Shown here: one piece after another, positions 1 to 5,724 of the stretch
Numbering within the stretch: the stretch's first letter is position 1
Layout: each line of letters begins with the position of its first letter
Sequence record: OR413581.1
DNA length: 64,000 nucleotides
Direction: 5' to 3' (one strand)
Position numbers and translations under genes: made by a program
Notes under the pieces: generated by a model
What the model was told of the DNA's origin: nothing
Seen by the model: only the letters and a program-made list of their open reading frames with translations
Databases searched by the model: none

Positions 1-21
1 GATATATATTACCTAGGTGAG
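1..21 (+). promoter_or_regulatory. Early-type phage promoter motif (copy 1)
   Basis: GATATATATTACCTAGGTGAG contains TATATTAC (5-12), the described phiKZ early promoter core; matches 58036-58056 at 20 of 21 positions. Truncated by the window edge. Confidence 0.75.
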
Positions 22-42
22 AGTTAAGAGATTAACTCAACT

Positions 43-70
43 GGCTACCCTCGGGTAGCCTATTCTTTTT
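43..70 (+). terminator. Intrinsic terminator
   Basis: GGCTACC-CTCG-GGTAGCC followed by TATTCTTTTT. Confidence 0.8.
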
Positions 71-96
71 TAAACCAATCGACTATAGAGTAAAAC

Positions 97-498
97 ATGA
101 CTATCAAGAAGTTCTTACAAGCAGTAGTAGTTCTGGCCGCATGTGGTATTGCAGCAACTTATGCTTTCGATAAGCCAGACGTGACTGAATACACATCAGC
201 TGATTCGGATTATGGCATTGCACCGAATGAAAAACCGGAACTGATGCGTGAGGTCGAACAGTTACAAATCTACAGACTGACGGACGGTAAGAACTGCACA
301 GGGCTGGTTATCGCTGATAAGAAATTGAAAATGTATCAGCGGTTAATCGACATATCGTGCAATCAACCAAAAGTCACCTCGGTCAGTGTATCGCCACTGG
401 AATTACCGAATTTGGTTGCTGTGAGCTTTTATCACAACGATGTGCTCGTCGGTCGCATCACCCTCAATCGTGGAGATATCAAAAATGAAATGCAATAA
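97..498 (+). CDS. Secreted/periplasmic hypothetical protein
   Basis: 133 aa; basic N-terminus, hydrophobic core and ATYA signal-peptidase-like site; two Cys. Confidence 0.75.
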   Translation: MTIKKFLQAVVVLAACGIAATYAFDKPDVTEYTSADSDYGIAPNEKPELMREVEQLQIYRLTDGKNCTGLVIADKKLKMYQRLIDISCNQPKVTSVSVSPLELPNLVAVSFYHNDVLVGRITLNRGDIKNEMQ

Positions 499-976
499 CG
501 TTAATCGCCACTTGGCCAAAGTGGTGCTTTTTACTGTGCTGTTGATGGCAGTTGTTGTTGGGCTACGGATTTCTAAGGCACGCGCTGACGAATTCAGCGG
601 GTTCCAGGGCAGCATTAACGGCAGCATTCCAGCATATACCCGCACCATCAATCTTAATGATAAGCCGTTCTGGTGCAATGCGCGTAAGCTGCTTAAGAAA
701 CAGTGTCGTGTAGTTGACATATCCTTCAACGGTCGTGTCGCTATCGTACACCGTCCGGGCGATAAAGATTGCCCAGGTGGTTGGTGGGGTGCAGTCGACC
801 GTCACAATGGTGACGCGTTATGGCTTATCCCTAATCGTGATGAACTATCAGTGGAGAAAATTTGCAGCAAAGATTTCAGAGCCGGTTTTGTACAGCGACC
901 GGATACCAAAACTCTGGCCTCCATCGCTATGTACTACGGTATGGAAACCATCAAAACAATCGACTATTCAGAATAA
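485..976 (+). CDS. Secreted 4-Cys protein, paralog A
   Basis: ATG at 485 overlaps the upstream gene end; signal peptide ending ARA; PFWC..C..C..C pattern shared with the next two genes. Confidence 0.75.
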   Translation: MKCNNVNRHLAKVVLFTVLLMAVVVGLRISKARADEFSGFQGSINGSIPAYTRTINLNDKPFWCNARKLLKKQCRVVDISFNGRVAIVHRPGDKDCPGGWWGAVDRHNGDALWLIPNRDELSVEKICSKDFRAGFVQRPDTKTLASIAMYYGMETIKTIDYSE

Positions 977-998
977 CTCAAAAAATTGAGGTGCTATT

Positions 999-1409
999 AT
1001 GAAACATTTTTTATTACCAGTTTTACTTGCTACTCTGGCCATTAGCTTCTTCGCTCGCGCTGGGAGTATCGAGTTACCAAAAGTTGTTAACGATCACGAA
1101 TACGGCGGGCCGTTCTGGTGCCAGAACTCTGACGTACAAGGCGGTAGCTGCCAGATCGTTGCGATGTCCGATAACAACCGTTACCTGTTAGTGAAAACGA
1201 TGGGCGGTGTCGCATGTGGCGACCCTGAATACGGGGTTATTAACATGGCAACCGGGCAAGCCGAATCCATGAACTATAATGATAACCAAGCCTGCAGTGG
1301 TGAAGCCGTTGCTGAGTTTACACGCGACCCAGGCGACAATGCCCTGACGGTTATCATGTACGACCCTACGATTAAGAAAAACGTAGGCATCAATAAACTC
1401 GACTTTTAA
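999..1409 (+). CDS. Secreted 4-Cys protein, paralog B
   Basis: SD GAGGT; signal peptide ending ARA; PFWC..C..C..C. Confidence 0.8.
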   Translation: MKHFLLPVLLATLAISFFARAGSIELPKVVNDHEYGGPFWCQNSDVQGGSCQIVAMSDNNRYLLVKTMGGVACGDPEYGVINMATGQAESMNYNDNQACSGEAVAEFTRDPGDNALTVIMYDPTIKKNVGINKLDF

Positions 1410-1422
1410 GTAAGGAAACAAC

Positions 1423-1806
1423 ATGCGTGGATTTATGGGTATTATCGCGGCGGTGTTCTTGACCGCTTCTGCTTCAGCTACAACCAGCGTAGAAGATTTA
1501 CTGCCAGGCACACCGTATCAGTACAACCCGCCTTCATTCGAAGTCTGTACTGGCGACGATGGCAGATGTGAAGAAGTCAGCCGTCACGACGAGTATATCC
1601 TGGTCCACGCAAAGGGCGAGGAAACTTGTCCGGCTGGTTACTACTTCTTGTTGAACTCAAAGGCACAAGAGATTGTGCCAGTAGAGACAATAACGTGCGA
1701 CCCGACGCTTCGCGCGTCGCTCGCTTACAATACGAAAACCAAACAACGCCTCCTGGTTATTGAACAGCAAGGGGTGGTGCGTGGTTCAGTAGCGCTCGAC
1801 CAGTAA
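1423..1806 (+). CDS. Secreted 4-Cys protein, paralog C
   Basis: SD AAGGA; signal peptide ending ASA; same Cys spacing. Confidence 0.8.
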   Translation: MRGFMGIIAAVFLTASASATTSVEDLLPGTPYQYNPPSFEVCTGDDGRCEEVSRHDEYILVHAKGEETCPAGYYFLLNSKAQEIVPVETITCDPTLRASLAYNTKTKQRLLVIEQQGVVRGSVALDQ

Positions 1807-1808
1807 CC

Positions 1809-1840
1809 GAAAAGTTTTCAGACAGATGTTATAACGTGAG
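1809..1840 (+). promoter_or_regulatory. Early-type promoter motif (copy 2)
   Basis: GAAAAGTTTTCAGACAGATGTTATAACGTGAG aligns with CAAAAAGAACTCAGACAGATATTATC at 25401 and ends in GTGAG like copies 1 and 7. Confidence 0.6.
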
Positions 1841-1860
1841 ATGACGACCCATCTCACTTT

Positions 1861-1905
1861 GGCCCTGCGGTGATTTCCCCAACACTTAGCCGCAGGGTCC
1901 TTTTT
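1861..1905 (+). terminator. Terminator-like hairpin in 5' leader
   Basis: GGCCCTGCGGT / GCCGCAGGGTC 11-bp stem (2 GU pairs) followed by CTTTTT. Confidence 0.55.
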
Positions 1906-1935
1906 AATCGACTATTACTCGTAAGGATTAAGCAA

Positions 1936-2436
1936 ATGAACATGAACATTCTCGACGATACCCGTTCTTCTTTCTTTACTCAGATGAACGTCAATCCCGA
2001 ACGTACCCGTGCCATTCTTTCCACTGGCTGGAAGTTAAAGCTGTTAGGCGAGTTAACCCTAAACCGCACCGACTGGCCAGAAGAAGCGACCGTATTGATT
2101 AACAGCATTCACAGCGAGTGGCTAGATGCTGCGTTGAATGCCCCACAACTACGTCCGTACTATCGGATGCTTCATGCGGGTTATGAAGTATACCGCAAAG
2201 GTTGGTACGCTGCAGCCACTTATTGCAAAACCCCTGAAGGTCGTGAAGACAACACTGTCGACCACGTATTAGTAAACAATTTCTGGGGCGACCAAATCGA
2301 AGTCTTACAACTTTCCACCGGTGACCGTATTCCGGCCTGTGAGTTATTCGAAACTAACGCACAAATGTACGAACCATATGCAATGATTCGTGGCCGTAAG
2401 GTCCCAATCATTTCCCTTATGCATATGGGGCTGTAA
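1936..2436 (+). CDS. Hypothetical protein
   Basis: Open frame; SD AAGGA supports ATG 1936 rather than GTG 1870. Confidence 0.75.
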   Translation: MNMNILDDTRSSFFTQMNVNPERTRAILSTGWKLKLLGELTLNRTDWPEEATVLINSIHSEWLDAALNAPQLRPYYRMLHAGYEVYRKGWYAAATYCKTPEGREDNTVDHVLVNNFWGDQIEVLQLSTGDRIPACELFETNAQMYEPYAMIRGRKVPIISLMHMGL

Positions 2437-2443
2437 ATACGAG

Positions 2444-2473
2444 AGGTAGCCTACGGGCTACCTTCTTTTTTTG
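2444..2473 (+). terminator. Intrinsic terminator
   Basis: AGGTAGCC-TACG-GGCTACCT then TCTTTTTTT; UNCG loop. Confidence 0.9.
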
Positions 2474-2490
2474 TTGAAGAAGGATTAAAC

Positions 2491-3117
2491 ATGAACGAGA
2501 TTACCCTGATTCGTTTCATCGACGACATGGTGACGTGTCAGAAAGCGAATCGTCAGGATACCAAACTGCGTATCAATCTGATGGAAGAAGAGGTAGAAGG
2601 GTTTCTGGAATACCCGCGATTGGTGAAGTGGTTTAAAGAAGCGCTGCCGCGTAGCTGGGAACAGCTAGAAGCGTGGTTTGCTCTACCTATTGCAGAACGT
2701 AATCCCAATAATACGATCTTCACCGGAACTACTGCATTAGATTTGGCTGGTTCGGTGGAGCAACCTAAACGTTTAGTTTTCTTCTACGTCAATGGCGATT
2801 CAATAATGGCTGATACAGTTAACTGGATTTCCGATGAGTTAACTGTAAACACCACTTTGGTCGGTAGCGCTGCTGATGCCTGGGTTGTTGGTCAGCACCA
2901 ATCGCAACCGTACGAAGAAATCAAAACCGGTTATTTAATCCCGATATATCTCGACGGCGTGGCACCGGGTCGTAGCGCAGAACTGTTCAAATTCCTGCTT
3001 ACTGAAACGTTAAAGGTTGTCGATTCTGATGCCGGACGTGCGTGGTACGAATTAACCAAAGAGCGCACCGATAGTTTTTGGGAATCACTCGGACACCGTA
3101 AGTTTATTCCGCAATAA
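2491..3117 (+). CDS. Hypothetical protein, possible degenerate GNAT at C-terminus
   Basis: SD AAGGA; C-terminal PGRSAELFKFLL...DSFWESLGH resembles GNAT motifs A/B. Confidence 0.65.
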   Translation: MNEITLIRFIDDMVTCQKANRQDTKLRINLMEEEVEGFLEYPRLVKWFKEALPRSWEQLEAWFALPIAERNPNNTIFTGTTALDLAGSVEQPKRLVFFYVNGDSIMADTVNWISDELTVNTTLVGSAADAWVVGQHQSQPYEEIKTGYLIPIYLDGVAPGRSAELFKFLLTETLKVVDSDAGRAWYELTKERTDSFWESLGHRKFIPQ

Positions 3118-3127
3118 CTCTCCTCTC

Positions 3128-3160
3128 TGGAACCCTTCGGGGTTCCATTTCTTCTTTTTT
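3128..3160 (+). terminator. Intrinsic terminator
   Basis: TGGAACCC-TTCG-GGGTTCCA followed by a T-rich tract. Confidence 0.9.
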
Positions 3161-3213
3161 ACGCATGACCTTTTGGATATGAACGACTAATACTTTCTCA
3201 TTAGAAGGCAAAC

Positions 3214-5724
3214 ATGCTCAAGGTCGAACGTATCATTTTGAAAGGATTTACCGGCATGGGGTTACATGAAATCGAAACGTTTGATTTCACCCTTAAGTCA
3301 ACCGTTACCATCATCCTCGGTGGCAACGGCTGCGGTAAAACAAGCCTCCTATCTGTTTTTCTCCCCTTAGCTCCAGCAAAATCTGAATTCCGTGAAGGTG
3401 GTTCTTACACTAACTACGCGTTAGTCGGGGACGACCGTCTTAAGTTTGAAGTCCTGCGACGTGGGTCTTCTTTGTCTTGTAGTATTTTCAATATCACTAA
3501 AGGTGTCTCCATCGTAGACTCGGTAAACGCCAAAGTTTACAACTCCATGGTGGAGCAATTAACCGGAATCACCAAAGAAATCAAAGAGTTAATTAATGGT
3601 GAGACCTTATTAACTGACGCCACTACCGAAGTTCGTCGTAAATGGTTTACGTTAATGTCAGAATCTGATCTGACGTACGTTGTTGGTTGTTATCGTCGTC
3701 TGCGTAAACTCGCTTCCAGTTTAAGTGGGGCCATTGAGCACACCGGCCGTAAAATCGGTGAGGCAAAAATGCGCGTGGTGGACGATGAAGAAGATCGTGC
3801 ACGTTTGGAAGTTCGTTTGAAAGAACTGGACGTTGAGCTTCAGGAACTAAACCGCACCATTGAAGCGAGACCCGGTTTAGATAACGCCGTTTCGGTTGAT
3901 AGTATCCGGAAACGCATTGCTTCGTTGCAACCGGCTGTAAAACTCATTATGGAACGTTATGGCGTTCTGCCTTCTGACGAACTGATTAACGAGTTTCAAA
4001 GTCGTGTGGTTGCCTGGCGTGAGCAAGCTGCCTCTGCTGAAACTGAATGCAACATGTACAATAAAGAGTTGTCACAGTTACTGGATGAGGAGTCGCGTCA
4101 AGCGTATCTGATGCGCAACCATACCGGTCTAAAACAAACAATCGACAGCTTAAAACAGGAACTGGCAACGTTCCAACAGAACTGGATGTTCCCGGCTCTG
4201 TTTGAAGGTACCCGCATTGATGTGGATAGCATTCAGAACGCGTTAAACGATGCCTGTAACTGGAATTTACCGTTGTCCATGCATTTGGACCAGTTAAAGA
4301 CAACAGATCGCCTGGGAGCGTTAGAGAAGCGTTTACAGGGTATGGATTTAACCTCTGCGGGTCTATCTGAAAAGCTGCAACGTTGTGAGAATGTGCTACA
4401 CGGTTTATACCACGACCGTCAACACTTCTTAGAAACTGCAGAAGTTGATTGTCCACAGTGTAACCACCGTTTCCGTCCTGGGATTCGTAAGTCGTTACCT
4501 GAAATTGAAAAGGCCATCAACGATAATGAAGGTTGGAAGAAGCAGCTGAAAGACGAAATGGATAGTCTTTTGCGTGACCGCAAAGAGATTGAAGAGGACG
4601 TCCGTAGCTTACGTACGATTCGCGAAATTGTCATGTCGTATTCCAATCATCCCGTTGTCGGTTTGTTTTTCCGTAAACTGCAGGAGCTGGATATCTTCAC
4701 CACGTCGCGGGATCGTTATGGTGCCATTGCACGTGCCTTTACCGAAGAGCTAGATTCGGCCATGATGTATCTGCGTCAATCGGCGAAGCTTGCAACAGCG
4801 GAACGGGAATGGCAAGAGGCTGTTGCCGCAGTAGGTAATGTTGATGGTGCGCTGAGTCAGAAAATTGAACACATCCGTTCACAACTAGACGGGGCTAACC
4901 GTCGACTGATAGAATACCGCAGACAAGCCAATGAGCTGGAACGCGAAACCACCCAACTGCAACAAACCAAAGAAGCAATCGAACGTTTCCAAAAAGGCTA
5001 CGAACATCTGGTATCGGAAATGAACATCTCCGTTAACAACGTCGTGGTTCGCGAGTTGTTAAACCGACGCGAAGCGAAGCTCGATGCGTACACTTCCGCT
5101 CGTGAACGGTTTCGTCAAATGGAAGGGGCTATTGCACGTTTAGCGGAATTGGAAAAAGAGCAAGCTGAGTTGCTCAAAGAACACCATCATGCCAGATTGA
5201 TTATCAATGCCGTCTCACCCGAAAAAGGATTATTGCGTCGTTACTTTTATGCTGCGATTACCCGCATCATGGATTTAATGAATCGGTATATCGAAATGGT
5301 GTGGGCATATCCGATGCAGGTTATTCCATGCGATCTAACCGACGGGGATTTGGATTATACTTTCCCGGTGCGATTAAAAGACCATGAAGAACTGGTGCCG
5401 GATGTGAAGAAAGGTTCGAAGGCACAGCGTATTATCTTTAACATGATGTTTCGTTTAACGGCGTATAAAGCGCTTGGTTTACAAAACTATCCTTTGTTAT
5501 TGGATGAACCCTCTGAAGGCATGGATGAAGAACACAAAAATCGACTGGTCAACTTCATTAAATCGTTGGCGTTGTCGGGAGAGTTTTCTCAATTGCTGGT
5601 CGTTTCGCATGAAGCGGAAGTTCATTCTAAACTTAACGAAGCCACCTACTGTGTCGTAGAACCAGAAGGTGTAACGCTTCCACCGGTGTATAACGAAGGG
5701 GTAATAATCAAATATGCATCATAA
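3214..5724 (+). CDS. sbcC: SbcC/Rad50-like SMC ATPase
   Basis: Walker A GGNGCGKTS, long coiled coils, central CPQC zinc hook, Walker B LLLDEP, H-switch VVSH. Confidence 0.92.
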   Translation: MLKVERIILKGFTGMGLHEIETFDFTLKSTVTIILGGNGCGKTSLLSVFLPLAPAKSEFREGGSYTNYALVGDDRLKFEVLRRGSSLSCSIFNITKGVSIVDSVNAKVYNSMVEQLTGITKEIKELINGETLLTDATTEVRRKWFTLMSESDLTYVVGCYRRLRKLASSLSGAIEHTGRKIGEAKMRVVDDEEDRARLEVRLKELDVELQELNRTIEARPGLDNAVSVDSIRKRIASLQPAVKLIMERYGVLPSDELINEFQSRVVAWREQAASAETECNMYNKELSQLLDEESRQAYLMRNHTGLKQTIDSLKQELATFQQNWMFPALFEGTRIDVDSIQNALNDACNWNLPLSMHLDQLKTTDRLGALEKRLQGMDLTSAGLSEKLQRCENVLHGLYHDRQHFLETAEVDCPQCNHRFRPGIRKSLPEIEKAINDNEGWKKQLKDEMDSLLRDRKEIEEDVRSLRTIREIVMSYSNHPVVGLFFRKLQELDIFTTSRDRYGAIARAFTEELDSAMMYLRQSAKLATAEREWQEAVAAVGNVDGALSQKIEHIRSQLDGANRRLIEYRRQANELERETTQLQQTKEAIERFQKGYEHLVSEMNISVNNVVVRELLNRREAKLDAYTSARERFRQMEGAIARLAELEKEQAELLKEHHHARLIINAVSPEKGLLRRYFYAAITRIMDLMNRYIEMVWAYPMQVIPCDLTDGDLDYTFPVRLKDHEELVPDVKKGSKAQRIIFNMMFRLTAYKALGLQNYPLLLDEPSEGMDEEHKNRLVNFIKSLALSGEFSQLLVVSHEAEVHSKLNEATYCVVEPEGVTLPPVYNEGVIIKYAS

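Follow-up and report, generated by a model that had tools for sequence, protein, structure and literature searches.

The gp179/gp180 junction

The window, i.e. the whole stretch of 64,000 nucleotides that was analysed, is the final 64 kb of the record of Salmonella phage SPLA3 (OR413581.1, from base 176594). Its bases 1–3000 are 100% identical to SPLA3 and share 96–99% identity with ~30 SPN3US-like phages (genus Seoulvirus). Genetic work on Salmonella jumbo phages uses SPN3US as its model. In the deposited annotation, with SPN3US numbering, bases 1–96 form the intergenic gap between the homologues of gp179 and gp180, and the stop codon of the gp179 homologue lies 10 bases upstream of window base 1. 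This gap is the control region between the gp175–179 operon and the gp180–183 small-protein cluster of an SPN3US-like jumbo phage. The gp175–179 operon starts at a variant promoter at SPLA3 base 172816 and ends at a terminator within the gap. On the other side, a weak ribosome site (AGAG) and the gp180 homologue (PHROG 9424), the first gene of the small-protein cluster, occupy 87–498 on the + strand, with the start codon at 97. No Pfam match was found for the proteins downstream of the gap, and their PHROG families carry no function annotation.

An early-promoter motif, a 5′ hairpin and an intrinsic terminator lie in this order in the gap, an arrangement referred to as unit 1. A first-pass annotation of this DNA had described a promoter core, two hairpins, a U-tract and a first start codon at 97, and all of them are where it had placed them. 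It had also reported that no gene lies between promoter and terminator, which we can confirm: the predicted transcription start at 19 and the T run at 66–71 both precede the start codon at 97, and the sole reading frame between the promoter and gp180 is a 13-codon GTG frame (18–59), with only 5 codons in other copies of the cassette. A leader peptide is ruled out, as this GTG frame is unconserved among the cassette copies.

The predicted early promoter and its family

The motif of unit 1, CAGATATATATTACCTAGGTGAG (23 bases, + strand), matches the consensus of its family with zero mismatches. Its in-window part spans positions 1–21; its first two bases, and the AT-rich stretch that precedes them, lie just upstream of the window. 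The core TATATTAC (5–12) is embedded in the 23-base motif CAGATATATATTACYTAGGTGAG. Taken alone, the 8-base core does not exceed chance significantly: the window has 3 matches where 1.2 are expected, and 14 of 100 shuffles also reach 3. The extended 17–23-base motif is far above chance, with 7 copies on the + strand of SPLA3 and 0 on the − strand. SPAsTU, pEa_SNUABM_29, Huxley and pEa_SNUABM_9 have 7, 7, 8 and 8 copies (30 in total), always on a single strand per genome, and reversed-pattern controls for the 23-base motif gave 0 matches in the same four genomes. The motif is thus found 7–8 times per genome, on one strand, in five phages of two genera. Elsewhere, units with this motif were found in IMG/VR contigs (48) and in metagenome contigs (56, non-redundant). 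A scoring matrix built from 52 motif copies gave 16 promoter-like sites in SPLA3, all on the + strand, and the unit-1 promoter has the top score among them (51.6 bits). A second, weaker promoter class (CAGATAGATATTATCT..GTGA) was also seen on the + strand only, at SPLA3 bases 85113, 26520, 85918, 124158, 172816, 8930, 40716, 18610 and 201997; most of these sites are outside the window.

The virion RNA polymerase of phage AR9 transcribes from an early promoter that was mapped by dRNA-seq and has the consensus AAATATATATTAT-(6N)-G (PMC5312081). The early motifs of jumbo-phage virion RNA polymerases have AT-rich cores of ~10–13 bases and, according to a review, are centred near −10. Unit 1 has the AR9 layout, with ATATATATTAC followed by CTAGGT as the 6-base spacer and then by G19. 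Because the layout matches the mapped early promoter of AR9, the G at position 19 (+ strand), 7 bases after TAC, is the predicted transcription start, by analogy with the AR9 dRNA-seq data (PMC5312081) and the review. phiKZ has an excess of TATATTAC on its forward strand (33 vs 9; controls, 10 and 12). The early promoters of AR9 and phiKZ resemble the unit-1 promoter in their AT-rich core, in being repeated, strand-biased and upstream of uncharacterised genes, and in the 6-base spacer followed by G. On the other hand, the SPN3US/Machinavirus promoter differs from both in an extra conserved stretch, CYTAGGTGAG, and in an obligatory hairpin at the start. Its layout, together with its over-representation and strand bias upstream of genes, is that of the early promoters of jumbo phages, and the assignment of the unit-1 motif as a putative early promoter of the virion-RNA-polymerase kind is well supported by comparison. 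A sigma-70 promoter scan of the unit-1 region found none, and the literature searched contained no transcriptome, transcript map or promoter paper for an SPN3US-type phage.

The 5′ leader hairpin

The 5′-terminal leader hairpin, hairpin 1 (GAGTTAA / GAGA / TTAACTC; 21–38, + strand), has 7 base pairs and an energy of −6.9 kcal/mol. The first-pass annotation had regarded it as a GNRA-capped part of a small-RNA unit, and this part of its reading did not survive comparison with the other members of the promoter family. All copies of the promoter motif have a hairpin directly 3′ of the motif, the stem sequences of which vary between copies while the pairing is kept. Of 91 distinct leaders, 87 have a hairpin that begins 0–2 bases from the predicted start, and the mean energy of the leader hairpins is −6.05 kcal/mol, as against −1.53 kcal/mol in a control stretch 60 bases downstream (91 leaders; Mann–Whitney p = 2e-23). 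Hairpin 1 is therefore not special to this locus: it is the 5′ hairpin that the promoter family carries throughout, and does not belong to a dedicated small-RNA fold. The GNRA loop is ruled out as a feature of hairpin 1, the loop being GAGA here and GCAA, GCCA or GCTAT in the orthologues.

The usual cassette consists of an upstream terminator, an AT-rich spacer, the promoter, the 5′ hairpin, an AATCGACYAT box, a ribosome site and the start codon, in this order. In bacteria, 5′-end-dependent decay of messages is classically hindered by a hairpin this near the 5′ end, and by analogy hairpin 1 most likely protects the early messages in the same way. It is similar to the Escherichia coli ompA-type 5′ stem-loop stabilisers in its distance of 0–2 bases from the 5′ end and in its variable sequence with conserved pairing. 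This likeness covers hairpin 1 only and is generic to the promoter family, and the stabilising effect belongs to the ompA type and is assumed here by analogy. Two phiKZ early leaders that we compared have no such 5′ hairpin, so that it is specific to the SPN3US-type clade.

The leader terminator and the leader box

The intrinsic terminator (43–71, + strand), recognised by a terminator scan and by folding, consists of a 7-base-pair hairpin, the spacer TATTC and six T (66–71). The hairpin, GGCTACC / CTCG / GGTAGCC (43–60), has five G-C pairs out of seven and an energy of −14.3 kcal/mol. Nine of the 11 bases 3′ of the stem (61–71) are T, including the run of six, as in the sequence definition of an intrinsic terminator, and the architecture is the same as that of the other 53 candidates in SPLA3. 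Many of the 54 candidate terminators on the + strand of SPLA3 have their T run after a T-rich spacer, 5–10 bases from the stem. Bases 1–100 fold with z = −3.4, and 0 of 200 shuffles fold as well. Two independent hairpins constitute both the minimum-energy and the centroid fold of the leader. A riboswitch-type attenuator is not supported, since there is no alternative antiterminator fold.

The position of this terminator is unusual. Of the 16 promoter-like sites of SPLA3, unit 1 alone has a terminator placed after the 5′ hairpin and before the start codon, and its terminator is the only one of the 54 + strand candidates that follows a promoter within 60 bases. Among the 56 metagenomic units, a terminator in the leader was found only in the SPN3US-type orthologue of unit 1. 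In the other cassette copies the terminator of the preceding operon is upstream of the promoter, whereas in unit 1 the terminator is 25 bases downstream of the start, where it sits like an insertion between hairpin 1 and the AATCGACTAT box (77–86). In the upstream context recovered from the SPLA3 record, there is no terminator between the gp179 stop codon and the promoter. Because gp179 has no other terminator, the unit-1 terminator must serve the upstream operon too; and since it is downstream of the promoter, it would also stop a fraction of the promoter's own transcripts. The first-pass annotation had named, as one refutation, a transcription start elsewhere together with a terminator that simply closes an upstream gene outside the window; half of this holds, as the unit-1 terminator is also the first one 3′ of gp179.

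The stems of the SPLA3 terminators fall into two groups, of 10–12 and 6–8 base pairs. Six other SPLA3 terminators located just 5′ of promoters have stems of 10–11 base pairs and energies between −17 and −19 kcal/mol. With 7 base pairs and about −13 to −14 kcal/mol, the unit-1 stem resembles instead the pre-gene terminators at 2443 and 3128, and is predicted to make a fairly weak terminator. The occurrence of strong terminators before promoters and of weaker ones inside operons or leaders suggests that expression is graded by terminator strength. If true, this would be useful for engineering SPN3US-like phages.

The leader box AATCGACTAT (77–86, + strand) is common to other early leaders. Its pattern, AATCGACYAT, has 12 copies on the SPLA3 + strand and none on the − strand; eight of the 12 copies are 13–23 bases before a start codon and four are inside or at the end of a coding sequence. 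Sites are found at 77–86 and 1907–1916 of the window and at SPLA3 bases 35587, 70400, 78092, 106594, 128303 and 235548. The genes that the box precedes include some that have the early promoter motif and some that lack it. The box may act as a signal for translation or for processing, or belong to a promoter of the non-virion RNA polymerase.

Conservation of unit 1

DNA similarity (~73%) to the diverged Seoulvirus phages STsAS, SPAsTU and pEa_SNUABM_29 starts exactly at the gp179 stop codon. The order of promoter, hairpin 1, G+C-rich hairpin and T tract is kept in SPN3US, SPAsTU and pEa_SNUABM_29, and inspection of the latter two sequences showed that the stop codon precedes this same order in both. 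The Huxley-type Machinavirus retains promoter and hairpin 1 at this junction but lacks the G+C-rich hairpin, so that hairpin 1 is followed by a T-rich tract alone. In PhiEaH2-like contigs, the terminator at the gp179/gp180 junction is replaced by a structured leader that is longer and has no T tract. The promoter is thus kept at this junction in at least three genera, although the adjoining gp179 has diverged beyond detection at the DNA level. Since Machinavirus and the PhiEaH2-like phages lack the full terminator, this comparison of the junctions indicates that the promoter is old and the full terminator specific to Seoulvirus. The absence of the terminator in the Huxley-type phages and its replacement in the PhiEaH2-like ones also indicate that it is dispensable for the function of the locus. 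In SPAsTU and pEa_SNUABM_29, an extra gene of 80 codons lies directly 3′ of the unit-1 terminator, before the gp180 homologue (L023 1604–1843; L024 1606–1845), and the AATCGAC box is missing at the locus of this extra gene.

These data bear on the possibility that the hairpin and T tract are only the end of the gp175–179 operon, that the promoter is silent or irrelevant or the start is elsewhere, and that gp180–183 are transcribed from an unrecognised promoter of the non-virion RNA polymerase, for example the AATCGACTAT box. The terminator is the first one 3′ of gp179, the AATCGACYAT box is also present before genes that lack the early motif, and the non-virion-polymerase promoters of such phages have, according to the review, a minimal consensus and are not predictable. 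Nevertheless, the motif is the zero-mismatch, top-scoring copy of the genome, and its retention at the exact junction in at least three genera, despite the divergence of gp179, is hard to explain if it is silent. We consider this explanation quite unlikely.

The pairing test of the terminator hairpin took in six distinct orthologous sequences that carry the G+C-rich hairpin. In the alignment, 90 of 90 pair cells are paired, and the stem changes are two one-sided, wobble-compatible substitutions. The first-pass annotation had proposed covariation of both stems across relatives: the pairing is kept, but the sequences are too similar for covariation to be seen, with only the two wobble changes and an uninformative shuffle control. 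Variable columns make up 2 of 28 in the stems and 14 of 26 in the loops, linker and tail (Fisher p = 2e-4, from few independent lineages).

Could the short RNA itself be the selected product? An RNA of 48–53 bases might serve as a decoy that sequesters Hfq or another RNA-binding protein of the host, or a nuclease, or it might regulate messages of the host or the phage. Transcribed from the strongest promoter, it would reach high levels in the first minutes; its stable 5′ hairpin, terminator hairpin and U tail form the minimal shape of an Hfq-binding small RNA; and both stems are kept while the loops and the linker drift. On the other hand, only about 2 bases at the 5′ end, 4 in the linker and 4 in each of the two loops are unpaired in the predicted RNA, and they are the most variable among the orthologues, leaving no conserved seed. 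An Rfam search gave nothing significant (best hit isrD, with E = 9.7 and 14.4 bits where the gathering score is 37), and the Machinavirus and PhiEaH2-like relatives do not have the second hairpin at this locus. Examined as a base-pairing (Hfq-type) small RNA, the unit-1 RNA has neither a conserved accessible seed nor a match to a curated family. It is therefore unlikely to be a base-pairing small RNA, because it has little single-stranded sequence and that part varies most, and a selected function of the RNA in general seems very unlikely to us.

A second unit downstream of gp183

A second unit (1806–1938, + strand) is found directly 3′ of the gp183 stop codon, 1.8 kb from unit 1. After the stop codon come a promoter of the variant kind, a hairpin of 8 base pairs and a terminator of 10 base pairs with five T; the AATCGACTAT box, a ribosome site and a start codon complete the unit, which has the order of unit 1. 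Units 1 and 2 thus bracket the gp180–183 cluster. In SPAsTU, each hairpin of the second unit shows one compensatory double change. The promoter of the second unit is of the variant type and has a 1-base deletion relative to SPAsTU and pEa_SNUABM_29, and its predicted RNA is ~68 bases long (1838 to 1905).

The two units raise the question of a regulated switch, in which the leader terminator would be efficient at first, so that only the short RNA is made, until a phage factor or the change from the virion to the non-virion polymerase permits read-through; gp180–183 would then be delayed-early genes. We know of no antiterminator in SPN3US-like phages. In favour of such a switch, the promoter with the best consensus is paired with a terminator, the design is present twice, flanking one gene cluster, and is conserved, and a study of phage 201phi2-1 raises possible antitermination in jumbo phages (PMC11512511). 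However, the RNA has no alternative fold, its minimum-energy and centroid structures being the same, sequence conservation in the leader is limited to the generic cassette, and the short stem of 7 base pairs suggests a constant leakiness. A switch of this kind is unlikely on this balance.

Expression data

Public runs matching the window are mostly wastewater libraries plus one transcriptomic run (X14), all in the form of assembled contigs. In the transcriptomic run, contig depth over 1–3200 is very high and uneven, although contig depth is a poor measure and the contigs show neither RNA ends nor an RNA of ~50 bases; RNAs as short as that are lost from standard libraries anyway. In 200-base bins, it is ~8.9k at 1–200, up to 104k at 1601–1800, 11.8k at 1801–2000, 24k at 2201–2400, 2.9k at 2401–2600 and ~3.9k at 3001–3200, and it is zero from 3201 to 5400. 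The drops coincide with the terminators near 1900, 2460 and 3150; the bin 1–200 mixes both sides of the unit-1 terminator. The genes downstream of unit 1 are clearly expressed, and the depth pattern fits terminators that work but leak. Over gp180–185 the depth is very high, and it is zero over most of the SbcC/SMC-like gene (3214–5724). A single-cell RNA run with the same species label had no phage reads. The contigs of another run (X11) end in a template-switch-oligo sequence of the SMART type at 1928, 2606, 3120 and 4932, in both orientations; these junctions may be fragment ends, not RNA 5′ ends.

A terminator probably shared by two transcription units

The first-pass annotation had read unit 1 as either a short early RNA or an attenuator. 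A short early RNA and/or attenuation is the expected outcome of its order, because the order of promoter, hairpin and terminator is real, unique among the promoter copies of the genome and conserved in diverged relatives. Gating in the manner of a riboswitch finds no support, with no antiterminator fold to carry it. The explanation that we favour, by a modest degree of confidence, is that one fairly weak terminator both ends the upstream operon and damps the unit-1 promoter, the short RNA being a likely by-product. The virion RNA polymerase would start at G19, so that the message opens with the standard 5′ hairpin of the family. The terminator at 43–71 would end the transcripts arriving from gp179, i.e. 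from the gp175–179 operon, and would also stop a part of those started at G19, without any regulation. The stopped transcripts would be RNAs of 48–53 bases, with two hairpins and a U tail, and the polymerases that read through would pass the AATCGACTAT box and the ribosome site into gp180–183. We infer that the terminator acts on the phage polymerase with partial read-through. An RNA of ~50 bases presumably exists, and it is probably a by-product, not a selected product.

Two observations speak against the by-product: the best promoter of the genome precedes a terminator, and the order recurs 1.8 kb away with compensatory changes. They hint that the arrangement, or the short RNA, is selected for. 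Units 1 and 2 might then produce functional early RNAs (~50 and ~68 bases), for example decoys for a host RNA-binding protein or nuclease, or form a factor-dependent antitermination switch, although to our knowledge a switch of this type has yet to be reported for the multisubunit RNA polymerases that phages encode. Selection of the two units in either form is possible but doubtful.

Relation to known systems

The arrangement itself is already known from phiKZ. More than 90% of the transcripts from its promoter P112 stop at the terminator T102 in the leader of PHIKZ221, producing an RNA of 71 bases, as demonstrated by ONT-cappable-seq and Northern blotting (PMC10914365). The same study reports 42 terminators in leaders across the phages studied and a short leader RNA of 141 bases from TU237 of phiKZ (PMC10914365). 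In 201phi2-1, eight of 11 short RNAs derive from 5′ UTRs by premature termination (PMC11512511). These phages are relatives with the same kind of nucleus and their own RNA polymerases, and in both a terminator in the 5′ leader lies tens of bases downstream of a promoter, so that the short RNA predominates and the full-length message is a minor product; the RNAs of phiKZ are measured ones, whereas the unit-1 RNA is predicted from sequence. With the predicted start, the distance from start to terminator in unit 1 is below the 250 bases that delimit a phiKZ-type leader RNA. By eye, the PHIKZ221 leader and unit 1 have no sequence similarity. Unit 1 also differs from phiKZ in that its promoter has the early consensus with the clade-specific 5′ hairpin and in that its terminator serves the upstream operon as well. 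Unit 1 is a predicted further case of the phiKZ-type short leader RNA.

At lambda PR′-tR′, 6S RNA is made, and read-through occurs under Q antitermination. Unit 1 shares with it a strong promoter, a terminator close downstream and a short RNA that would be constitutive unless the polymerase is modified. Unlike in lambda, no Q-like factor or binding site is visible, and the polymerase is the phage's own multisubunit enzyme. The PeSL cassettes of the T4 type are similar in that a terminator hairpin and an early promoter are repeated between small uncharacterised early genes, and also in the extra 80-codon gene directly after the cassette in SPAsTU and pEa_SNUABM_29, but the phage family, the polymerase and the motif all differ.

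Unit 1 makes a cheap test case, with a predicted start at G19, a predicted product of 48–53 bases and partial read-through. It bears on whether the 23-base motif is the early promoter of the clade, on whether the virion polymerase obeys ordinary intrinsic terminators, and on short leader RNAs in jumbo phages outside Pseudomonas. In phiKZ itself (NC_004629, 206349–206400; L169 11350–11400), we noticed, between PHIKZ197 and PHIKZ198, a TATATTAC core with a G+C-rich hairpin and a T tract immediately 3′ of it, which may be another case of a promoter before a terminator, or chance.
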